DNA of 64,000 bases from Heteronotia binoei (taxonomy: Eukaryota). This document shows positions 34,150 through 64,000 of the stretch, in pieces. The position numbers and the translations under genes were made by a program. The stretch's first letter is position 1; the number at the start of each line of letters is the position of its first letter. The stretch spans positions 52,142,001-52,206,000 of the forward strand of contig NC_083223.1 of the NCBI RefSeq assembly GCF_032191835.1. Direction: 5' to 3'. The notes under the pieces are model-generated. The model made no database searches and was not told the origin of the DNA. It saw only the letters and a program-made list of their open reading frames with translations.

Positions 34150-34271
34150 CTTCCCAGGGGTCTTCCCGCCAGAGTACAAACACGCAGACGTGGTGCTTCT
34201 TCACTGCTGTTTTGCTGCTTAAGGCTGCAGGTCGTTCTTTTGCGCTCAGCGAGCTAACGAACAGGGTGAGT
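34150..34271 (+). promoter_or_regulatory. Putative non-coding first exon of RNASEH1-A (donor at 34266)
   Basis: CpG-containing segment ending ACAGG|GTGAGT; the homologous position in copy B reads GACG|GTAAGT (59331). The 5' boundary is approximate. Confidence 0.45.
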
Positions 34272-35810: not shown

Positions 35811-36534
35811 GAGGTGGTGCATATAGTTTCGGTTCTTTTTCCTTTTGTTTAAATACGGCTATGTATGGGGCAGTGTAACAGTTTAGAGAAACCCACTCTA
35901 CTACAAATAGAATACCTCGTTCAGCTTTTCTTCTCTATACATGTGTTCACATCCTGGAATACCAATTTAAAAATCCAGTGCGGTGGACAGAGATTTCTGA
36001 AATCATTTATTATGTAACCTTGTGCTATTTGTGTCTTAAAATGCAACACATGTATGTTTAGCATTGTAAAATGCATGCTTTTTCAATAAAAGTTTTGTTT
36101 GTTTTTTTAAAAAACAAATAGAATACTTTTTTCTTAGGTTGCCAGCCCCCGACGTGGGATGGGGGACTAAAATAGTTAGATCCAAATTGAGAAACTCCTG
36201 CCGATACGGGGATGGAGCCTGGGGAGGGCAGTGAGACCAATGCCATTGAGTTCCCTTTTCAAAGTGTTCATTTTCTTCAGGGGAACTGATTTCTGTAGTC
36301 TGGAGATCAGCTTTGTCTCCAGGTGAAACACCCCCTCCCCCACATCCATACCTTTTATACTGTCCCAAAGTATGCAACAGTCAGAGAGATTTAATAGAAA
36401 ATGGCTACAGAAGTGCTTGGCCATTCCTGATGCTTCAAGATTAAGATTACTTCTAAGTAGCCTCTGCAAAAGCTATTTTGTAGATGTGGCAAACTTTAGT
36501 TTTACTGTGGTTTTTAATTTTTGTTTTATAGTGT

Positions 36535-36558
36535 ATGACCTGTGAGTTGTTAAACTGA
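36535..36558 (+). promoter_or_regulatory. 7-codon uORF upstream of RNASEH1-A Met1
   Basis: ATG ACC TGT GAG TTG TTA AAC TGA, 3 nt after a strong acceptor (ttttgttttatag, AG 36530-36531); the paralog keeps the same start, length and stop. Confidence 0.6.
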
Positions 36559-36604
36559 ATAAAGTTGACTTGAGTGGGGTGAGGCTGCAGGGAAAGTAGG
36601 GATC

Positions 36605-36720
36605 ATGCTGTACTGGGCCTTGGGCTGGTTAATTCACCCTCGTTTTCTCCCCAGCAGTTGCAGCGGGAACATGTTCTATGCTGTGCGCAAAGGCAGGAGG
36701 CCAGGAGTGTATTCATCCTG
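36605..36720 (+). CDS. RNASEH1: RNASEH1-A first coding exon (mitochondrial leader plus start of HBD)
   Basis: In-frame ATGs at 36605 and 36671; donor TG|GTAAGC. Confidence 0.9.
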
Positions 36721-39700
36721 GTAAGCAGCCAAACAGAAGGTGGAGCACCAGATACCCTGCCCCCCCTTCTTGTTTCTTCCCCAGTTCCCTGAACTTATTA
36801 AATCTGTTTCCCATTGATTTGGTGAACTCAGTGGAGTATATTTCTGAGGAAATGTTTAGCCTTTCTTCTTCAGAAGTCATCAAACAACTTTGGTTCCTTG
36901 TTTCTTGAGAGTATCAGTGCCCTGGTGTTCAGATGACACAAAGAGATCCCAAGCTACAACATGTCACCCAGGATGTTGTCCTAACCCCATTAAGTGTTGT
37001 CACTGAGAGTATGTTCATTGTGCTTAGTTTAACAACAGTGTACAAAGAATAAAACCGGTTAGAAATCAGTTTGAAAGAACTGGAGTTCCCCCTCCCACCC
37101 ACAATGAACTATCTAATTTGTGCATTTGTTTGGGTATTTATTTCTCTGTTTTCTTTTCTCCATTTTATCTTTAGAATAACCTTGTGAGGTAGGTTACACT
37201 GATAGAATGTAACTGGCCTAAGAACACATCAGACTTCCATGGCATAAGAACATAAGAGAAGCCATGTTGGATCAGGCCAACGGCCCATCCAGTCCAACAC
37301 TCTGTGTCACACAGTGGCAAAAAATTTTATATATACACACACACTGTGGCTAATAGCCACTGATGGACCTGTGCTCATATTTTTATCTAAACCCCTCTTG
37401 AAGGTGGCTATACTTGTGGCTGCCACCACCTCCTGTGGCAGTGAATTCCACATGTTAATCACCCCTTGGGTGAAGAAGTACTTCCTTTTATCCGTTTTAA
37501 CCTGTCTGCTCAGCAATTTCATCGAATGCCCACGAGTTCTTGTATTGTGAGAAAGGGAGAAAAGTACTTATTTCTCTGCTTTCTCCATCCCATGCATTAT
37601 CTTGTAAACCTCTATCATGTCACCCCGCAGTCGACGTTTCTCCAAGCTAAAGAGTCCCAAGCGTTTCAACCTTTCTTCATAGGGAAAGTGCTCCAGCCCT
37701 TTAATCATTCTAGTTGCCCTTCTCTGGACTTTCTCCAATGCTATAATATCCTTTTTGAGGTGCGGCGACCAGAACTGCACACAGAACTCCAAATGAGACC
37801 GCACCATCGATTTATACAGGGGCATTATGATACTGGCTGATTTGTTTTCAATTCCCTTCCTAATAATTCCCAGCATGGCGTTGGCCTTTTTTATTGCAAA
37901 CGCACACTGTCTTGACATTTTCAGTGAGTTATCTACCATGACCCCAAGATCTCTCTCTTGGTCAGTCTCTGCCAGTTCACACCCCATCAACTTGTATTTG
38001 TAGCTGGGATTCTTGGCCCCAATGTGCATTACTTTGCACTTGGCCACATTGAACCGCATCTGCCACGTTGACGCCCACTCACCCAGCCTCAACAGATCCC
38101 TTTGGAGTGCCTCACAATCCTCTCTGGTTCTCACCACCCTGAACAATTTAGTGTCATCCGCAAACTTGGCCGCTTCACTGCTCACTCCCAACTCTAAATC
38201 ATTTATGAACAAGTTAAAGAGCATGGGACCCAGTACCGAGCCCTGCGGCACCACACTGCTTACCATCCTCCACTGCGAAGACTGCCCATTTATACTCACT
38301 CTGGCAGAATGGGGATTCAAACCTGTGGCCCCCAAATATCACTCTTAACCTCTACACTGACTCTTTTTTGTTGTTAACATTGGAAGTTAGGACCACATGA
38401 TCTCAGTAAGGGCCAAGCTGTGGTGCCTGCCATTTTAGAAATGAATTTGACCATTTAAAAAATGCAGCCCTTGTGGCATGTTTTTGAATGGTCATATTCT
38501 TCTCTAAAATGGCATCAGTGGCCACAGATAGAACTCATGGGGTACTGTTTGCTCCTGACTTTCAAGAGTATAAAAGTGCTTTGGAAACCTTTTATAGTTC
38601 ACACTAATTGTTAAATAGTTAAATAATAGTTTAGTGTTACAAATTGGAGAGATGGTGATGAATTGAAATTACTGCCTGCTGTGTAGGGGCTTGAGTGTGG
38701 CTTGATGGCTGGAAGCTGTGTGCCTCTTTCCTCCCATTATCCAGGACTGGGATGTTGGCTCAGGTATTCTTGCTGTTTTATTTAGATTGTCTGTGCTCTA
38801 GCTTATATTGTTTGCTAGTACGTGTTCTTCAACTTAATATAGGTTGGTCTCCCCATACTCTTCCTATAGTACAAAGCAAAATATAGATAGTGCCCAAGTG
38901 TACATATGTACCCCCCACTGCTTTTCAAGTGTACGTATACATTTCTTACTGCCCCCCCAGCCCTGCTTTTTAATCACAATTAGTATGAAATTAATCAGGG
39001 TGAGAAATGTAAATAACTTTAAATATGGGAAGGGATTTTCAGGGTCATGGAATCCTGGCGTTTAGCTGCTCCCTGCCCTCCTTCTAAACGCCTTTATCAC
39101 ATAGCTTGTTTTGCCATTTACATCTTTATGTCTTTATAGGGATGAATGTAGAGACCAAGTTGATGGATACGGGTATGCTAGTTTCAGAAAATTTGAAAGT
39201 GAGGAAGATGCTTGGGACTTTGCAAATGGCGAGTCATCGAGATCAACAGGTAACTCTCACAGAAAGAACTGGTGGTTGGCAGATACATGGAACTGGGCAT
39301 GATGTATTCCACTGAAAATACATCTTGTTATCAGACCATACCTGCTAGCAGCGTAATGGACTGGTCATATATCTGATAGAATGTTCCTTCTATTTTTCTT
39401 CAGATGGTGTCAGTTGAATGCTCAGTTACATAATTTAAGTAAATTGTTATTCTGAAGTTTTGGTTGAGTTACTGTTGTACTAAAAATAGCTTTTTAAAAA
39501 GTGAAATGTTTAGATCTATTTAATAGGAAAAAATCAGTTTAAAATACCCACTAAAAAGTTAAAGCTAGAAGAAAAAGGCATAGGCATGTATTCTGAAGAT
39601 TATAACACTTCTCTGTGGTTAAAGTGATCTGAAAAATCTTACAAGAGAGCTACCAGGTTATATCTTTACATGACATTTTTCCCCATATAGATACATTCTC

Positions 39701-42700
39701 CACCCCACCCCATTTTCTGGGAGCCTGTTTCACAGTGTAGGAGGCAGAATAGAAAAGCAAGGATGGTATGATCTATGAGCTTGGTCTGCTATATAAACTT
39801 AATCAAGACACATTCCCACTGGTTGCAAGAAATAGACAAGAAATTTTCTAGTCTTGGCCCAGCGAAGGACGGTATATTGGGACTTCAGAAAAGTGAATCT
39901 TTACGATTGAAAAATTTATAAACGATCTATATCACTTTATCACAGTTATACGAGCTTGGAGAGTATGCTCAACCAATTTTTTTCTTTTTTTGCATTTTTC
40001 CATCTGTAATCACTCTAGGCTATGTAAAATTTTTAGCAGTTCCTTGTTACCATAAAGCATTTATGCTCATGCATTTGAATGCTGCCCTTTCAGCTGTCCT
40101 GTATGGGAGATATTGTAATTATCTTATTCAGACAGGCTTTGCCAGTGTGGCCTGAAAAGGGTTGACTCCTTGCCCTACATGACACTGGAATGTCTATTAT
40201 AATTTCTATCCTGAGTTATGGATTGCCCCTATTTTAACAAAATTACCATCTACCTTATCAAAAGATAGGTCTTGACCTGGATAGCTCTGGCAAACCCAAT
40301 CTTGTCAGATCTCAGAAGCTAAACAGGGCCAACCCCGGCAAGTATTTGGATGGGAGACCTCCAGAGGATACCAAAGTCAGGAAGCAGAGGCAGCCTATCA
40401 AGCCACTTCTCTGAATGTCCTCCATGCCCCAGTAGGAGTCTCCAGAGGCTGCCATGACTTACAGGCACAGGGGCACAAACAGACACACGCATGTGAATAC
40501 ACACACAAATTTACAAAAAGATAACACATTCCCTTATCTGTTGATGGATAGAGAGCTAAGGACTTAGCTGAATGTGGTCAAGTATCTCTCCACCACATTT
40601 TCCTTAAAGAAGTTGAAAAGGAACAGACTAGCTGATTCCAGGCAGGCTGTCTTAAGCAGAAACATTCAGTAGGTAGTAGCCTGAGGGTAGTAGCTTGGGC
40701 ACGGAAGCAGTCCTTGAGATAAATACATACCACTAAAATAGGAAAGTTCCAGTGAAATGGGCCATTCAGTTGAGAAGCTAGAAAACCAGAATTGCATTTA
40801 TGTGTACACTTCAATGAAAATTAATCCCACCAAACTCGTTCAGAGGAAACAGGTGAAGTTTGGCTGCAAGTCTGATAAGTTACAGTTCTAAAGTGATTGG
40901 GATCTCGGTCTTTCACTTCTGGTGAGTAGCTCGCTTTGCATAGAAGGTTCTGTTCTTACTGAAAACCTCTGTTGCATAATACAATATATTCCCTTTATAC
41001 TGGGAATGTTGACAGGAGATACAAGGAATACAGATGCATGACTACCTGGTGACCCAGTGGTTGTTACTGAAGGTGCACTTTATGCTTGTCTTCCTAGTAT
41101 TGTAGCACGTGCATGCTACAGCCCTCCTACTTTAGAGTGTGATGCTTCACTAACTTGTTTGTCAAGCTAGTTTAGTCTGATATATGTCAGAAAGATGTGC
41201 TCTGAAATTCACTGTCATTATAATCTCTGGACAAAATTTGAGTCCAGTGGCACCTTTAAGTCCACCAAAGATGTGCCAGGTATAAGCATCACTTCTTGGA
41301 TACATTTACACATCAATATATCCAATATTTGTTTGCTTCACTATGATTTCCCAGATAATTAAATCCAAACAAATGGTGACTATAAACTAAGCTTGTTAGA
41401 CAGTGGGGTGACAGCAGAGGAGCCATATGGGTAGCAAAGGCTGCACATTATAGTATATGTGCCTTTTCCTTGACATAGTTCAATGGTTGAGCAAAAGAAA
41501 GGTCATAGCAGAGGTGAGTCTTAAAGACAGATTTGAGAGAGAGACATTTTGTCAGGTCTAGAATTCAATTTAATTCTACTGAGGAAAACTGAAAATGAAA
41601 CAATTTTTTTATTGACTAATAACAGAAGGACATATGCATTTGTACAGAAGTTCACTTTAGGGCAAGTGAAAAATTAGAAATGTGGAAATATGTTTTATGC
41701 CCAAGTAGAAAGAATTAATTTCTAACCTGTATCTCGAAGAGTTTATGAGCCATTGTATTTATGATTGTATTTCTGAATTAAAAAATTAAGCAAGGTAAGC
41801 AAAATACAAATTTATGTTCATAGGACGCTATACAGATGTTTATACTGATGGATGTTGTTCAAATAATGGACGCCGTGATGCACGTGCTGGAACAGGAGTC
41901 TATTGGGGACCTGATCATCCTCTGTAAGTACAATCCCATGATAATTAGATAACATTTCTTAAAATTCAGTCTCTGTAACAGTTTCAAGAATTGCAAATCA
42001 ACACTTTGGATTTCTGTACCCAAATGACTGCTTTATGTCATTGACTCTCTGACGACTGCAAAATCCATTTGAACCAATAATGCTGAACTTAGTACCTCCC
42101 ATCATTAGTTATAATTAAAGTAAAGAAATGGATAAATATGTACTCAGAAGTGCTACATTAGGTAAAGTCGGGACCCAAGTTTAAGAAATTAAGCTTTCTT
42201 GTCCCACTGTGTTTGATATATAAATGTACTATGCAACTATTTAAATATTAAAATTTTTAGTGTATTGTATGTTGAAAGCAGCTAAATTAGTGTTGTGAGT
42301 TCAGAACTTCTACTTAAAACAGCTAATATTTCTGTTCATGTCTTGCAAATTATTATGAAGCGCCTGCTCCGTTGGGCTATTGTGCTCCTTTCTTTCTATC
42401 ATACATTCCTGTTGCTGTTGAAATAACCTGCTTTTCCCCTCAGTAGAAAGTGGGTATGAAACTTACTTTTGTTTGGTTCAATTTCTGCCTAGCCCTTCCC
42501 GTAAACAGGCTCAGAGCAGGTTACAACATTGGTTTAAAAGAATAAGTCAAACATTATCCCTAACCAAATGGTGTTCAGACTATTTAAGCTATTTTCCTAC
42601 ATCCCAATGGTATTCAGTTCAGAAAAAGATGGTAAGTGCTCTACTTTCAGCGGTAGTAACAAGACTTTATAAGAAATAATAACAAATGATAACAGGAGGG

Positions 42701-45700
42701 ACCAGATGGTATTTGACATCTGCTGCCTCACCCAAAAGCCTAGTGAAATAGCTCAATTTAACAGCCCCTGTGGAACTATAAAAGGTCCAAAGGGCTCTGA
42801 TCTCTAGTGGCAACTTATTCCACCAGGTTGGGACCAGGGCCGAAAACGCTGTGGACCTAGTTGAGGCTAGGCAGATGTCTTTTGGGCCAGGGATAACCAG
42901 TAAGTGTTGTTTAATGAACGCAAAGCTCAACAAGGCACATATAAGGAGAGGCAGTCCCATAGGTATGTTGGTCCCTGGCCACTCAGGGCCTTAAAGGTAA
43001 TGCCAGCACCTTGAACCAAGCTTGGAATTCTTTCTACAGCCAGTGCAGTTTGTGGAGCACAGGCTGAATGTGTGCCTGTGAAGCCTTCAGCAAATTAAGG
43101 TCTCTGGGCCCAGATAAGCTATCTGGGCCCAGAAACCTTAATAGAAAATCCATTCCACATTTTCCTTGCAACTTTGTGCTGCAGTGTGTTTCAATGGAGT
43201 GGAACTCAGTTTCACTTTCTAGTGTTCCTATGACCAGCTGAAGTTGTTGCCTTCTGAAGTTGTGTCCTTGCAAATAAAGGGTTGATGCTTTGAACCAGCT
43301 TGTCTTTGCTGAATTGACCTGAGAACTGGTGCCTAGTGAGTACTCTAACCTGGGAACCCTCAGCCAAAGAGGGATATTACACTGGAGAGCAATTGCCAAT
43401 CTGAGTAGACAGAAGGATGGGGGGGGGGGGGGGGAGAAGCTTGCAAGGCCCAGCCATTTCATGTTTTCCTAGTTTCAGAATTTTATAGATTTTGTTTCTG
43501 TTGTGATCCTTGTGCTTTTTCTAGATGATTGATTTTTAAAATTGCATTGCCAAATCCCACTATTCCCCCACTTTTCCATTTTAAACAAAATATTGCAAGA
43601 GTTTTTTGTGAGTTTGTATTTTAAGTAAAGAATATATTTTTATTGTGTTTGTCTGTGTCATTTATAAAGTTTATATTTCCACTACCTGGTATTACATATT
43701 ATGACATGCATGGCGTGGCCCCACAAAGCCCCCCATTTATGTCAGATCTGGCCCTCCTAACAAATGAGTTTGACACTCCTGATCTAGTCAAATGGGTCTC
43801 CTGGTGAAGACATTTACAGCCCTTGAACTAATCTCACTATACCAGATAGATCCAGGTTGCGTAGCTGTCTTGGTCTGAAGCACGAGAACAGATTTTGAGT
43901 CCAGTGGCACCTTAAGACCAACAAAAGTTTATTCAGGGTATGAGCTTTCGTGTGCACACACACTTTTTCAGATACATAGAAATGTAACACCATACCAGGT
44001 CATACTCCCTTCTCCCCATTTGTGTATCCTAAATTTACAGTTCTGACACTCTTCACCCAAATGATAAACTTCTCATCCTTAATCAGGGTAACTGAGAACC
44101 ATGGACACCTATAAGCCATCCAGCTTCTCCTGAAAGTTTGTTTTCTCTCTGGAATACCCTTCAAGGTGTTGTTTTAGAGCTGACATGTCAGCATTTGTCC
44201 AAGGAAACATTTTTTCCTAGAAAAATAGCACCCATCTCCAGAGTTGTGTGTATGCAATGTAGGTATGCCATCCTTGCATGCTTGTAATTGTTTTTTTAAA
44301 AATTAAATGAACAGTTGTATGATGAGTTTTATTTACATTATTTATAGCCTGCTTTTCTCACTGGGACTCAAGGCAGATTACACAAAGTGAGTGAATACAG
44401 TCAACAGGATGGGACAATACAATCAACAGGATTTGAGTTGCAAAACCCATAAGAAATCCAAAAAAGCAAAATTGAAGCAAAGCATAGGTGTTAACATGAC
44501 ACATAAAATGATGAAAAATTACATAGCAGAATCCAATATACCACACACTCAACATAATATAAACCACAGTCATTAATCGTTTGTCCATGTAACTTTGTGA
44601 AACATTGTACAGTACTATCCTATTGCCTACATAGAAAAGCCCTCTTGAATAATTCAGTTTGGCATAGTTTGCAGAAAGCCAGAAGAGTTGGAGCATTCCT
44701 GACCTCTTTAGGCAGTCTACTCCACAAGGTCACAGCAGAAAAGGGATGTGTATGAGCAGTTTTTGATTTTGCCCATTTGTAGGTTACCTGCACAGGGCCC
44801 TGTTCAGATGAGCAAAGCTGTCATGGTGGAGCAAGGAGGAGAGACAGTGTTGCAGAGATTAGGGTACAAGACCATGAAGGGTTTTGTATGTGACAGCCAG
44901 TACTTTAAATGGAGCCCCATAATTGATGGGCAGAATGGGAGTAATATGCATGCTCCAACTAGGTCCCTGTAATAACTGAGCTGCAGCATTCTGTCCCTAT
45001 CATAAAATCCAACTAAAAATAACTATTTGTGTAACTTTCTACTGCAAAGACAATTTAGTATTTAATTGTTCCATAAAAATAATTTCTGATCAGATGATTT
45101 TTTTTATTTCTATTTTTTTTGCAGAAATGTTAGTGAGAGACTTCCTGGGCGGCAAACTAATCAAAGAGCTGAAATAAATGTAAGTTGCAGTACAAAATTT
45201 ACAAGACCTGTGTTATCCCAACTTCCTGATTTGCATGGGGATTTGCTCTTTTGCTCCCCTGAAAGATGATTTACTACTGGTAACACTTTAAGATTTATGT
45301 TAACAGACATTGCCAAATTATAGTTTGGTGTTTTATTAACAATACCGCAGCTTATATACTTTATCTTCCCATATGCAGTGTTGTTTGTGGCAATCCAGTT
45401 TGTCAGTGCAAATTAACTGGAAACTCTGTGGTTGGTGCTTGCCCTCCAAAGCAGAATCAGAAGCTACAACTTGGTCGTGGCTTCTAAGTCTGGCTTGGAG
45501 ACTAAACACTTATTTAGTTTGCCAGTTCAGATGGAATAGTAATCTGTAGCATCCTATGAAATGGGAAGGGGACTGCAGGGGGAGTAGGGAGCATGTCAGC
45601 TGACACTAAGCCACTATAAGATGATTGTTTAATCACCCATTAGGAAAATAGAATATTTTCATGGAGCACTATAGTGGATCATATAGTTGATAAATGCATG

Positions 45701-47781
45701 AATTGACTCACATGCCTCAAGTGGCCAAAGAGAGAGGTCTATAACAGAAGCCTCCTGTAAAGGATACAGTAAATAAATGACCGTGTATTCATTGTCCTTG
45801 GGGTAACTTCCTATGACATGTTATAAATGGTTCTGTTTAATCTCCTGAGTTGTGTTTTTGCCAAATATATATATATATATATATTCAGGCAGCTACCAGG
45901 GCTGTACAGCAAGCTAGAAGTCAAAATATCACGAAACTGAATATCCATACTGACAGCAAGTTCACCATTGATGGTAAGCAGTTGGGTTTTTTGATTATAG
46001 TAAATTTATACATTGCCCTATTACATAATACACAGTGAGCAGTGGAGACCTGTGAAGACAAGCAAGGGAAGGGGAAATCCTTGCTGTCTCAGCCGCTGTC
46101 ATTTCCGACCTTCCTGTCTCCCTGTTTCCCTTACCTTTCTGGCTTTGCCTGTTTCTGACCTGTTTCTGCCAGGGTTAGCTCAGTAGTGTGGTGGAAAATA
46201 ACTCATTGTGATTTGTAGATAACGGTATTTTTACTGGTAAATTGATGATGTGATTTAGGTCATACTAATAAGCCAACAGGTTAATGTAACATGTCTATTA
46301 ATTTGAAGCTATTGACCATAAAATCATTTGTTGAGAAGAACTGGGACAAGAGGTACCTATAGGCCTACAGTTTTTTCTGTTCTTTCTCCATCTAGCCATT
46401 TCATGCACATCTGGATTTATCCTCTTTCAGCTTGCCATATGCAGTTCCAAACAAGGAGCTGGCAGTGGGTGAGCTCTACAGTTGGCTAGGCAGAAACTGA
46501 AATTAGTTCTGAAAACTGGTAGGGCCCATTTGTGTTTGAAGCTAATGGTAATATCCTGTCAACTGTGACCATTGTAAAACAGGCCAGTAAGCAACTGAGG
46601 ATTTTAGCATATATAGAATTGTTATTTTGAACATGGACTGAACAGCTTGAGAGAACCCGTCCTCTTCCAACTAGCGTTCACAGTTAGGGTGAACAGGAGA
46701 AACTGCTTAGGAGGAGGTCACTCTCAAGACATTTAGCCTCATGGCATGGAAGACCAGTTGTAAAAGGACACTGACTTAAATAGAACAAGACTTACAGTAA
46801 CTTCCTAAGCAGAGATGCAACCTTTTAAATCAAAGTCAGTGAGTTTACATTGGTGTTACTCAGGATGGCACTGTTCTTCTTTATTTCCTGTCTTTAAAAT
46901 GGCAGGCTAACTGCATTTTATTTGCAGAGTGTGAGGATAAATTCATTACAGGTTCATTAAATGTCCAGATGTAGCCTGTTTGCCTTTTGAAACATCTCAG
47001 CTGGATGGCATTTTATGGATGCTGTGAGATCATTTCTGCTAATCTTTTAAAAAGATATGATCTAGCTACCGTCTTAAAAAAGGATCCTTTTTTATTCTGT
47101 AGGTATGACAAAGTGGGTTCCAAACTGGGAGCGTAATGGTTGGAAAACCAGCACCGGGAAAGATGTAGTCAACAAAGAGGACTTTCAAAGGCTTACTAAC
47201 CTTTCAGAAGGCATGGACATCAAATGGGTATGTAACAAAACTGCTGATGGAGTAAAGAATGAATACATATCTTTAAAATGCAAATCCTGCAACAGAGTAT
47301 GAGCGATTTGTTTGTGTAGTCATGATATTCACAATAACAATATAAATATATATTTATACCAATATAAGAGGTTAGAATGAGGGTGTTTCAGTTCCTTAGA
47401 AGGAAGCTGCCCATCATTCTGGCCCTTATCTTTTCAGCTGTGTTTCCTTGAGATGAAAGAATAAAGTTAGTTTCACAGCTGTAGATAGAGTTGCTGGAAA
47501 GAGGTAGAAAATGTATTCTCGCTTAAAATAAGAAAGAATTGCACTTTGTTCCCAAAATAATAAAACGATATTAAAGCATTGACAATTAGTAGTGGTGTTT
47601 GTAGCAGATGTTGTAGATTAGTAGTAGATGTTCTAGACAAATGCTAGTGATTGCTGTTTGCCATACACTTTTAGTTACTTTGGAAACTTCTTGTCAACAG
47701 ACCCATGTTCCAGGTCATGCAGGATGTAAGGGAAATGAAGCTGCTGATCGTCTTGCAAGAGAAGGAGCTGGAAAACCCTGA
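36605..47781 (+). CDS. RNASEH1: Ribonuclease H1 copy A, join(36605-36720,39140-39249,41824-41923,45125-45179,45889-45973,47103-47227,47701-47781), 223 aa (201 aa from Met23 at 36671)
   Basis: The frame is open across 7 GT-AG exons: leader [69 protein letters not shown], and catalytic domain with YTDG, RAE, TDS, HVPGH, AADRLA. It is divergent to RPS7, as in other vertebrates. Confidence 0.95.
37245..38301 (-). mobile_element. 5'-truncated CR1 LINE (RT C-terminal part) in RNASEH1-A intron
   Basis: ORF with [17 protein letters not shown] and [11 protein letters not shown] motifs; (TTCTTATG) tail; TGGCA direct repeat at 37240-37244 and 38302-38306; absent in copy B. Confidence 0.95.
39140..39249 (+). 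CDS. RNASEH1: RNASEH1-A coding exon 2 (HBD)
   Basis: tctttatag|G GAT GAA TGT...ACA G|gtaact; [36 protein letters not shown]. Confidence 0.93.
40275..40515 (+). mobile_element. 5S rRNA-derived SINE (SINE3-like)
   Basis: cttgtcagatctcagaagctaaacagggcc...gtatttggatgggagacc resembles the 5S internal promoter region; (CA)-rich tail. Confidence 0.8.
41824..41923 (+). CDS. RNASEH1: RNASEH1-A first catalytic exon
   Basis: (G)[33 protein letters not shown], 100 nt, donor GTAAGT. Confidence 0.96.
42680..43090 (-). mobile_element. L2/CR1-clade LINE 3' fragment
   Basis: Minus-strand [17 protein letters not shown] motif typical of the ORF2 C-terminus. Confidence 0.65.
44330..45000 (-). mobile_element. 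Degraded L2-like LINE 3' fragment
   Basis: gtgtaatctgccttgagtcccagtgagaaaagcaggctataaat-type tail on the minus strand and a gtggagtagactgcc motif. Confidence 0.55.
45125..45179 (+). CDS. RNASEH1: RNASEH1-A exon containing the catalytic Glu
   Basis: [18 protein letters not shown], 55 nt. Confidence 0.96.
45865..45884. repeat. (AT)10 microsatellite inside a 3' splice site
   Basis: gtttttgccaa(at)10tcag|GCA. Confidence 0.9.
45889..45973 (+). CDS. RNASEH1: RNASEH1-A exon containing the second catalytic Asp
   Basis: [29 protein letters not shown], 85 nt. Confidence 0.95.
47103..47227 (+). CDS. RNASEH1: RNASEH1-A basic-protrusion exon
   Basis: [42 protein letters not shown], 125 nt. Confidence 0.96.
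47701..47781 (+). CDS. RNASEH1: RNASEH1-A last coding exon
   Basis: [29 protein letters not shown]. Confidence 0.96.
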   Translation, partial: THVPGHAGCKGNEAADRLAREGAGKP

Positions 47782-61258: not shown

Positions 61259-61335
61259 ATGGGCTGAGGCTTCAGGGAAGGTGTGGATTGTGCTTTGCCT
61301 GCTTGATTCACCCTTGTTTTCTCTACAGCAGGAAC

Positions 61336-62996
61336 ATGCCTTATGGTGTGCGCAACGGCAGGAAGACAGGAGTGTATTCATCCTGGTAAGCAGCCGAAGG
61401 TGGATGGTCTGGTACTCTGCCCCCTCCCCTCTTAATTCTGCCCTGCGGGTTGCATCAAAGGTGTTCCCTATACTTAAAACTGTTATCCATTGATTTGGTG
61501 AGCTCAGTGAAGTTTATTTCTGAGGAAATGTCCCTTCTTGTGGTTAGATTTTACACCTTTCTTCATCAGAAGTCATCAAACAATTTGGGTTCCTCGTTTC
61601 TTGAGAACATCAGTGCCCTGGTGTTCAGATGACAAAGATCCTGAGCTGTCACATGTCAGCCGGGATGTTGTCTTAACTTTTCATGCTAAGTGTTGTCACT
61701 GAGAGTATTGTTCATTGTGCTCAGTTGAAAAACAATATACAATGGGGAAAAACAGGTTAGAAATGAAGTTTGAAACAAGTGTGGTCCCCCCTCCCCCCAC
61801 AATGAGCTCTTATTTGTGCTCATTTCTTTGGGTATTTACTTCCCTGTTTTGTCCTCTTTTCCAATTTATCTTCAGAACAATCTTGTGAGGTAGGTTATGC
61901 TGAAAGAATGCAACCGCCCTAAGATGATACATCAGGCTTCCATGGCAAAGTGGGGATTCAGACGTGGCCCCCAAATATCACTGTGCACTGATTCTTTTTG
62001 GGGGTTAACATTGGAAGTAAGGGCCAAGCTAGATGTTACAGCAACCAGAGGTTTCACCTGTGTCTGCTGCCATTTTAGGAATGAATTTGACCATTTAAAA
62101 AATGCAGTCCTCATGGCATGTTTTTGAATGGTTGTATTCTTTAAAATATAGCAGAGGTGGCCAACGGTAGCTCTCCAGATCCTTTTTTTTTTTTTTTGCC
62201 TACAACTTCCATCAGCCACAGCCAGCATGGCCAATGGGGCTGAAGGGCGTTGTAGGCGAAAAAACATCTGGAGAGCTGTCGTTGGCCACCCCTGACATAT
62301 CGTTTTGCTCTAAGAGGGAAGAAGTGCTTTGGAAACCTTTTATAGTTCATGCTGATTATTAAATGGTTAAATAATTAGTGGGGATGAATTGAAATTACTG
62401 GCTTTTGAGTAGGGGCTTGAATGTGTCTTGATGGCTTGAAGCTGGTTACCTGGATTCTGAATCTAGCTGCAGTTTCCTCTCCTTCCATTAGTCAGGACTG
62501 GGATGCTGGCTCAGGCATTCTTCTGTTTTATTTAGTTTGTCTGTGCTCTAGCTTATATTGCTTGTTAGTACATGTTCTTCTACAAATTATAGGTTGATCT
62601 CCCCAGACTTCCTATAGTACAAAACAAAGTATAGAAACTGCCAAAGCGTACAAATGGATTTCTTACAGTCTCTCCCCCCTCCCACCCCTGCTTTTGAATC
62701 ACAACCAAAATTAACTAGGGTGATAAATACAAATAACTGTAAATATGGGAAGGGATTCTCAGGGGAATTGAATCCTGGAGGGGTGGTGGGGCAGGGTGCT
62801 TAGCTGCTCCCCGTCCTTCTAAAAGCCTTTATCGCACAGCTTGTTTTGCCATTTACCCCGTAATCTCTTTATAGGGATGACTGTAGAGAGCAAGTGGATG
62901 GATACCGAAATGCTAGTTTCAGAAAATTTGACACAGATGAAGCTGCTAGGGACTTCGCAAGTGGCGGGTCATCACAATATGCATCACAATCCACAA
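61336..62996 (+). CDS. RNASEH1: RNASEH1 paralog copy B, partial: join(61336-61385,62875-62996); the catalytic exons would lie beyond the window end
   Basis: MPYGVRNGRKTGVYSSW / DDCREQVDGYRNASFRKFDTDEAARDFASGGSSQYASQST. The frame is open with intact AG/GT sites, and the flanking introns align with copy A. Functional versus pseudogene status cannot be resolved here. Confidence 0.8.
62152..62294. mobile_element. Palindromic MITE (same family as 702-840)
   Basis: cagaggtggccaacggtagctctccagat...gttggccacccctg. Confidence 0.8.
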
Positions 62997-64000
62997 GTAA
63001 GTCTTGCAGAAAGAACTGGTGCTTGGCAGATACATGGAAGTGGGCATGATGTATTCCACTGTAAATATGTCTTAGTAGGAGACCATGACAGCTAGCAGGA
63101 AAGAAAGGAAAGAAATATGCCTGGTTGATGCCAGGCAGGTTTTCTTAAGCAGAGGAGCAAACTCAGGTAGTATTTGGAGCATGGAGATGGTCCTTGAGAT
63201 AAATACATACCACTAAACTGAGAATAGGGAAGTTCTACTGAAATTCACCACTCATAGTCTGAGAAGCTTGAAAATCAGAGCTGCATTTATATGTACACTT
63301 CAGTGAAAATTAATCCCACTGAAGTCATTCAGAGGAACAGGTGAAGTCTGACAAGTCACAGTCTTAGTGCTTCAGATTTGGGTCTTTCACTTCTGATGAC
63401 GATCTCACTTTGCATGGAAGGTTCTGTTCATACTGAAAACCTCTGTTGCATAATATAGTATCTTCCCTTTATACTGGGCATCTTGGTGGGAGATACAAGG
63501 AATACAGATGTTTGACTACCTTGTGATCCAGTGGTTTTTACTGAAGGTGCTCCTCATACTTGTCTTTCTAGTATTGTAAGAGATGCTTTGACCTGTGCAT
63601 GCTGCAGCCCTCCTGCTTTAGAGTCAAGCCAGTTTAGTCTGGTCTGTCAGAAAGATGTGCTCTGAAATTCACTGTCGCAATTATCTCTAAACAAAATTTG
63701 AGTCCAGTGGCACCTTTAAGACCAAGAAAGTTTTATAAGCTTTCAATCATCACTACCTGGGTGCATTTACACACCAGTCTCCAATTTTGATATATTTATT
63801 TGCTTCATTATGTTTCCTCAAGAATTACATCCAACAAATGCTGACCATATAAACTAAGCTTTTTATTCTTTGCATCTTTTAAACATCTTCATTATGTTAT
63901 ATGCTGATTGCTGCTCACCTACTACCTATACATATGGAATGGTAACTTCCATTTCAGTGTATCTGAAGAAGTCTTAAGTGCACACAAAAGCTTATATCTT

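Follow-up and report, generated by a model that had tools for sequence, protein, structure and literature searches.

We found that the gecko Heteronotia binoei carries an RNase H1 gene that lacks the exon coding for the linker between the HBD and the catalytic domain, and that the transcripts of this gene join the two domains directly. The gene, here called copy A, lies on the plus strand of a 64,000-nt stretch of genomic DNA (GCA_032191835.1, CM063325.1:52,142,001-52,206,000; hereafter the window), which contains no N bases. RNase H1 is usually encoded by one housekeeping gene that evolves slowly, and its eukaryotic hallmarks are an N-terminal HBD, an RNase H domain with the catalytic residues DEDD and a dual start Met. 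Copy A is a lineage-specific paralogue and not the housekeeping RNASEH1; the canonical gene is kept nearby. Overall, it is likely that copy A is a functional, lineage-specific RNASEH1 paralogue in which the compact form of the enzyme has become fixed in the genome.

Two RNase H1-like genes are located on the plus strand of the window, copy A and copy B, the remainder of copy B lying past the window end. Copy A corresponds to the 201-aa 'ribonuclease H1-like' model of NCBI (P0272), exactly the length given in a preliminary description of this DNA, and was found via a search restricted to the HBD of the longer isoform. The locus of P0272 (L002) matches window positions 26671-57781 at 100% identity, with the gene end at 47781, and residues 18-54 of P0272 give a 100% tblastn match to the HBD exon. 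Copy B is P0287 (207 aa; window-equivalent 61336-70997, where position 3001 of L003 is window position 61336). The canonical gene, copy C (P0163, the 290-aa 'ribonuclease H1-like isoform X2', and P0269, 309 aa), starts at window-equivalent 92,189, about 28 kb past the window end and about 44 kb downstream of copy A. The array has the order A-B-C, in tandem and on a single strand. The exon translations of copy A were searched singly against Pfam, while whole-protein work was done on P0272, which agrees with the exon map. Homologues were collected by a one-exon search over all libraries, which led to full-length reptile RNase H1, and by a word search with one of these, which led to the squamate orthologues.

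The direct splice was examined by mapping reads to positions 36400-42300, using three raw RNA runs (X4, X5 and X6) and one contig run (X1) from two studies; the joints reported are those listed, and 33 further weakly supported joints exist. The joint from 39249 to 41824 (GT..AG; mapped as 39247 to 41822, with the cut moved by +2) was found in 46 reads of X4 and 51 reads of X6 (97 together). In X1, which comes from a different study, a 310-nt contig with a depth of 297 runs from 39139-39247 straight into 41822-41923. The joint of the first intron, 36720 to 39140 (GT..AG), was covered by 215 reads in X4 and 177 in X6. No form other than the direct splice appears among the joints listed. Throughout the intron (39250-41823) the depth in X4 and X6 was 0, save for two bins at 0.2-1.7, one with a short interspersed element (SINE) and one with a dispersed repeat, and these were covered equally in X5, a run without copy A expression. 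X5, which derives from another sample, gave just 2 junction reads at the first intron and essentially no copy A signal; expression of copy A differs about 100-fold between the two samples compared, being high in one and nearly absent in the other. The preliminary description had placed the phase-1 end of the HBD exon at 39249 and the phase-1 start of the first catalytic exon at 41824. Both positions are exact, and reads from two studies confirm the junction, with no intervening exon among the listed joints. It was also right that the candidate exons at 39691-39765 and 40610-40672 carry stops. Its statement that no open phase-1/phase-1 exon exists in the intron, however, does not hold literally, as a mechanical cassette search of the copy A intron returned 38 such open AG..GT intervals, which arise by chance. 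None of these 38 intervals within 39250-41823 is expressed or homologous to a linker exon.

The fate of the linker exon becomes apparent from the comparison with copy C, where it occupies L001 13983-14168 (186 nt, 62 codons) and runs from phase 1 to phase 1. In blastn, the matching blocks of C and A follow the same order through the intron as far as C 13551 = A 41229, and the match resumes at C 14433 = A 41396. A three-way alignment demonstrated that 881 nt of copy C (L001 13552-14432), including the linker exon, have no counterpart in A or B. In copy A they are replaced by a scar of 166 nt (41230-41395, plus strand) that begins with a fragment of a dispersed repeat, and the counterpart in copy B (63676-63865, plus strand) has an identical junction. 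The repeat seed of the scar is found again at 1952, 33380, 57719 and 63700. Since the scar junction is common to A and B, the simple reading, which the alignment supports, is one deletion of the linker exon in the A/B ancestor, before the two copies split. The lost exon had phase 1 at both ends, so that the reading frame is preserved when the HBD exon is spliced to the first catalytic exon. The loss of a symmetric linker exon, giving a compact RNase H1, had been postulated beforehand and is now corroborated by DNA homology to the 186-nt exon of copy C. The accompanying label RNASEH1 has to be amended, since the gene is a paralogue; the exon loss, moreover, is common to copy B and predates the split.

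Isoform X1 of copy C contains a further, optional exon of 57 nt in the linker region (L001 13284-13340). Copy A retains a disabled homologue of it at 41016-41072 (plus strand), in which AG and GT are kept and which carries an in-frame TGA common to copy B; the RNA depth here is 0 (bin 40931-41127). In the copy B homologue (63490-63546) the same in-frame TGA is present and the acceptor is also gone. The stretch of copy A without counterpart in copy B extends over 39352-40685, within 70 nt of the 39352-40615 proposed earlier, and with copy C as comparison it can be divided into a deletion of about 1 kb in B and a SINE insertion in A.

All exons of copy A are on the plus strand. The start-codon exon (36655-36720) contains the ATG at 36671, with which P0272 begins, has a W codon split by the intron and matches Pfam Cauli_VI. 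It is followed by the HBD exon (39140-39249), which ends in phase 1 (ACA G before the gt) and matches PF01693 on its own with E 6.4e-07. The intron 39250-41823, defined by the junction reads, stands for the two introns and the linker exon of the canonical gene and, apart from the deletion, is collinear with L001 11617-14892 of copy C. The first catalytic exon (41824-41923) starts in phase 1 (GA CGC after the ag) and encodes the catalytic Asp62. The next exon (45125-45179) encodes the catalytic Glu103, and its start is matched by the unaligned ends of 124-129 reads that continue beyond 41923. The catalytic exon 45889-45973 includes the motif IHTDS with the catalytic Asp127, the exon 47103-47227 was placed by Pfam and by alignment to P0272, and the last coding exon part (47701-47781) includes THVPGH and NEAAD with the catalytic Asp191 and ends with the TGA stop at 47779-47781. 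Translations of single exons match Pfam Cauli_VI (the RNase H1 N-terminal domain) and RNase_H. A processed (retro)pseudogene was considered and is ruled out by seven spliced introns at canonical positions, by the tandem arrangement with the parent gene and by introns that can be aligned to copy C. The sequenced animals differ from the reference by a synonymous T to C change at position 39200 in all reads. In the exon 45125-45179, a Pro to Ser change (LPGRQ to LSGRQ) is present in X4 and X6 and absent in X1, and represents a coding polymorphism of copy A.

At the protein level, P0272 keeps both functional domains. The Pfam HBD (PF01693) covers residues 2-44 over the whole profile (E 9.8e-19) and RNase_H (PF00075) covers residues 58-198 (E 3.3e-41), with 13 residues between the domains in copy A compared to 74 in copy C. 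A connection (spacer) domain of about 48-115 residues is not found in copy A, its exon being deleted. P0272 matches human RNase H1 with E 1e-82 and the human HBD structure 3bsu with E 5e-13. The catalytic DEDD residues are retained as D62, E103, D127 and D191; their alignment columns are invariant or nearly so, and they line up with the catalytic residues of human RNase H1, although the human crystal constructs used in the comparison carry D210N at the third of these positions. The human HBD contacts Y29, W43, K59 and K60 correspond to Y3, W17, R33 and K34 of copy A, one Lys being replaced by Arg. The AlphaFold2 model of P0272 reached a mean predicted local distance difference test (pLDDT) score of 91.4 and a predicted template modelling (pTM) score of 0.71, with pLDDT values below 50 only at residues 49-53. 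In Foldseek, the model of the catalytic domain superposed on 2qkb, 2qk9 and 8swc with template modelling (TM) scores of 0.93-0.96, a root-mean-square deviation of 0.9-1.5 A and E 1e-22.

Copy A differs from the canonical gene at its 5' end as well. Reads beginning at 36654 carry an unmatched 30-nt extension (82 reads in X4 and 72 in X6), which matches 34235-34264 with 1 mismatch (chance matches expected: 0) and is followed there by a GT donor. The mRNA of copy A has a non-coding first exon, of which the 3' end lies at 34235-34265 (plus strand; GT donor at 34266; placed by the loose ends of reads), spliced into 36655, 16 nt before the ATG at 36671. Upstream of this ATG, a relic of the mitochondrial-targeting start with an in-frame ATG and 22 codons is located at 36605-36670 (plus strand), a region that the observed transcripts mostly remove as intron; in tblastn, residues 1-50 of canonical gecko proteins align from 36605 onwards with 60-62% identity. 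Because the transcripts splice past the leader, their first AUG is the 'nuclear' Met. A dual start, with an upstream Met and mitochondrial leader besides the internal Met, was not encountered in the transcripts seen, and the NCBI product starts with MFYAV. A minor unspliced form of copy A may retain the leader start. The acceptor used in copy A is located in the old leader-coding sequence, where the codons for FLPSS make a polypyrimidine-AG. The same acceptor-like motif is found in copies B and C, and the skipping of the leader may be older than the duplications.

The three copies have evolved at very different rates. In a tree without long branches, A and B are joined with support of 100/99, A, B and C with 84/80, and the group is placed inside Gekkota with 100/98. 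In this tree the branch of C measures 0.049, compared to 0.28 for A, 0.26 for B and 0.25 for the stem of A and B, and the proteins of A and B have evolved more than 10 times faster than that of C. This tree left out the invertebrate outgroups as well as long-branch frog and sturgeon genes. A first tree with those rows had its root on the A/B branch, which was taken as long-branch attraction or convergence, and it was rebuilt. That A and B descend from an ancient paralogue shared with frogs is ruled out, as the introns of A, B and C still align at 76-84% identity. Outside H. binoei, the protein collection contains no gene that is nearer to A or B than to the canonical gene of the same species.

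The non-coding divergence K amounts to 0.184 for A-B, 0.240 for A-C and 0.235 for B-C. With a clock, these values imply a short shared stem of roughly 0.03, which is a rough estimate, compared to tips of about 0.09. The ratio of non-synonymous to synonymous substitution rates (dN/dS) is 0.41 for A-B over 150 codons (18.5 synonymous changes at 93.5 sites, 31.5 non-synonymous changes at 356.5 sites) and 0.40 for A-C over 188 codons. When amino-acid changes were polarised, 12 (and 4 ambiguous ones) fell on the stem, 14 on A, 17 on B and 1 on C, with ten three-state sites; among the 35 differences between A and C, 26 are specific to A and 1 to C. The introns show an indel rate of 0.022 gap openings per aligned base, from which about 6.6 indels would be expected in the 603 coding bases of the A lineage, while none was seen. 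Neither frameshifts nor stops were found in copies A and B. We read this pattern as a fast near-neutral or adaptive phase right after the deletion, followed by purifying selection on both compact genes.

Short linkers as the norm in squamates, a possibility raised in the preliminary description, are ruled out by orthologues with full linkers. The linker comprises 60-75 residues in python, boa, elapids, Anolis, Pogona, Varanus, skinks and five other geckos, and the other squamate proteins have 287-300 aa. Compared to canonical vertebrate RNase H1, as represented by the human gene and copy C, copy A has the same HBD, an RNase H domain with DEDD and the same intron positions; its identity is 80% with copy C, counted over the residues common to both, and 67% with the catalytic domain of the human enzyme. 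It differs in the absence of the 62-aa linker exon, in a leader that is unused in the transcripts seen and in its sample-restricted expression. Copy B is the sister of copy A, with the same scar, a lost leader start and 12-16 shared replacements. The two are 79-80% identical, and only copy B has lost the HBD Trp (W42R). A second 'ribonuclease H1-like' gene with a full linker is present in Paroedura picta (P0201; P0270/P0271) on another chromosome-scale contig; it is at least 90% identical to the canonical gene of that species and looks like another, recent duplication of RNASEH1 in geckos.

The same junction between HBD and catalytic domain occurs in isoforms of other vertebrates in which the linker exon is skipped (Eublepharis P0194, Crotalus P0175, Falco P0281, Sus P0291, Bufo P0292 and Cetorhinus P0306; 223-234 aa). 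Their frame is preserved because the linker exon is symmetric. However, these isoforms are optional, predicted products of single-copy housekeeping genes and keep the leader, whereas copy A no longer contains the exon in its DNA, which leaves the compact form as the sole product, and its sequence has diverged. Further skipped isoforms of 223-234 aa with the leader kept are P0273, P0276, P0289 and P0299, and such isoforms are annotated in shark, caecilian, toad, birds, rattlesnake, leopard gecko and many mammals; a compact RNase H1 may be a conserved minor isoform across vertebrates. Compact 'ribonuclease H1-like' genes are also found in frogs (Dendropsophus P0314, 206 aa; Discoglossus P0020, 195 aa), where they are extra copies that evolve fast and whose linker is short or absent, like gecko A and B. 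Their origin is independent, as the gecko genes nest in Gekkota beside copy C and have alignable introns. P0314, P0020 and P0052 (201 aa) share with gecko A and B the sequence N-x-H before the third catalytic Asp, and P0314 also has M176T. The attachment of the frog genes to the A/B branch in the tree with long branches reflects either convergence or a long-branch artefact. Literature searches on RNASEH1 duplication in geckos and on an exon-3-skipped isoform yielded no relevant paper. The compact architecture is not unheard of and the gene models are already in RefSeq, while a gene hard-wired for the compact form is undescribed.

The linker has a length of 64 aa in human, 48 aa in C. elegans and 115 aa in Drosophila; its role is described as unexplained, and a 'dog on a leash' model of processivity has been put forward (PMC7657459). 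The human spacer is elsewhere given as 62 aa (PMC3750045). It serves as the contact for P54nrb (PMC6846478), and the whole of RNase H1 has been described as measuring one helical turn (PMC8005817). An artificial counterpart of copy A is the human spacer-deletion mutant dSPCR (residues 73-135 removed), in which the HBD is likewise fused almost directly to the catalytic domain. The mutant dSPCR is reported to be inactive and unable to bind P54nrb (PMC3750045, PMC6846478), whereas copy A is a natural gene under selection with about 26-38 lineage-specific replacements.

From the comparison of the three copies, the history of copy A can be summarised as follows. The ancestral gene, together with at least 3.3 kb of upstream sequence, was duplicated in tandem. 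In the A/B ancestor, about 0.9 kb with the symmetric 186-nt linker exon was deleted, leaving a repeat fragment at the scar. The canonical gene kept both leader and linker and evolves slowly. If copy A is a functional paralogue, the protein of copy A would act as a nuclear or cytosolic nuclease for RNA:DNA hybrids, with the catalytic domain held within roughly 40-45 A of the HBD. With the catalytic domain held this near, the enzyme would be expected to cut nearer to the footprint of the HBD and to have a shorter reach and a lower processivity than the canonical enzyme. A natural tether of 13 residues should alter both the positioning of cleavage and the binding of partners, and copy A might serve a tissue-restricted task. 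The change in processivity and cleavage positioning that had been suggested for the compact form would fit the literature.

Several observations weigh against copy A being a working enzyme. The human enzyme is inactive when the spacer alone is deleted, according to PMC3750045, which cites deletion mutagenesis and calls the spacer indispensable, whereas it is still active when HBD and spacer are both removed (PMC3750045). Drosophila constructs without the linker beside the catalytic domain were insoluble (PMC7657459). In view of the spacer-deletion and Drosophila results, the activity of a form with a 13-residue tether is not to be assumed. In addition, the A lineage replaces six positions that are invariant in 33 other tetrapod sequences (K33R, C108T, E112Q, Y125H, M176T and F184C), and its dN, averaged over the whole lineage, is near the neutral rate. 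The expression contrast rests on two samples, and the RNA data cover copy A.

A different function was also considered, in which copy A would be a stable binder of hybrids with little or no turnover and would act as a reader, a shield or a competitor of the canonical enzyme. Deletion of the spacer is stated to abolish human activity while the HBD still binds (PMC3750045); the HBD, when present, restrains catalysis (PMC7657459, PMC8005817), and the replacements Y125H and C108T of copy A are near the active site. However, a pure binder would have no need for the four catalytic carboxylates and the aligned substrate-contact residues, all of which have survived in A as well as in B over a neutral divergence of about 0.12 substitutions per site, and the model of the catalytic domain is confident and near the human fold. 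We regard such a binder as unlikely, and a functional compact enzyme as the better explanation.

Even less probable is that copy A is a transcribed duplicate decaying neutrally, with the compact form as a functionless by-product. Such decay would agree with a protein evolving more than 10 times faster than copy C, with the excess of A-specific differences (26 of 35, against 1 specific to C) and with a lineage-averaged dN near the intron substitution rate. It is difficult to reconcile with the intact frame of 201 codons and the use of all splice sites where about 6.6 indels are expected, with the A-B dN/dS of 0.41, with an expression that is high and sample-specific, and with copy B, which is also intact at 207 aa. 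That a linker-coding exon persists in copy A and is used in other tissues or via weak splice sites is very improbable: the 38 open phase-compatible AG..GT intervals, the 33 further minor joints and the restriction to two samples would leave room for it, but the homologue of the linker exon is deleted, 41016-41072 carries a stop, the intron has a depth of 0 in the expressing sample, and the NCBI model, built on its own RNA evidence, also has 201 aa. An assembly artefact that removed the exon, for which no supporting point was found, can practically be dismissed, given that the junction is present in RNA reads from two independent studies, that the scar recurs in copy B, of which the sequence has diverged by about 16%, and that the window is free of N.

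Beyond the preferred explanation of a functional compact paralogue, we tentatively suggest that the loss of the linker opened a new function. In this case A and B would have become neo-functionalised as a tissue-restricted, possibly germline, nuclear RNase H1 after a burst of replacements that followed the deletion. Such a burst is suggested by the stem, which carries about as many amino-acid changes as either tip over a neutral time only about one third as long. Those replacements that recur in the independently compact frog genes (N-x-H by Asp127 and M176T) may compensate for the missing spacer, although this scenario is rather doubtful at present.

The window contains further features related to the array. 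The start-codon exon of copy B is located at 61329-61385 (plus strand; ATG at 61336) and its HBD exon at 62875-62996 (plus strand), ending in phase 1, with P0287 reading SQST-R-DYPVVYTDG across the junction. In the HBD of copy B (62876-62996) the conserved Trp is replaced (W42R in the numbering of copy A), and F2P and A4G occur near the start; judging from these residues, its hybrid binding may be weaker than that of copy A. The SINE specific to copy A (40268-40515, plus strand) forms a gap in the A-C alignment and has a head resembling 5S rRNA (40276-40382; Rfam RF00001, 29 bits, E 0.0012, under the gathering score). In intron 1, an insertion specific to copy A and absent from B and C (37249-38301) represents the 3' part of a non-LTR retrotransposon (a LINE fragment) with a reverse-transcriptase domain on the minus strand. 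Its RNA depth is very high in all runs, with reads that are only 95-99% alike, and many reads go back by 59-76 nt at 37243-37318, though the local copy is without a tandem repeat; other active copies of this retrotransposon family probably carry one. Tandem Repeats Finder detected no repeat in 36700-39200, and Rfam gave no match in 37100-38500.

The linker of RNase H1 has been argued to act as a leash for processivity, as a ruler for the cleavage position and as a dock for partners such as P54nrb. In H. binoei, two natural genes without the linker have existed beside a normal gene, long under selection, and copy A is strongly expressed in one sample. P0272 and P0287 on the one hand and P0163 on the other are matched natural proteins, with which it can be asked whether the spacer is indispensable and which substitutions compensate for it. 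The array also provides a clean example of a gene duplication that freezes an alternative-splice isoform into a gene of its own. The interest of these genes is moderate and lies chiefly in the natural experiment they offer on the connection domain of a well-known enzyme.

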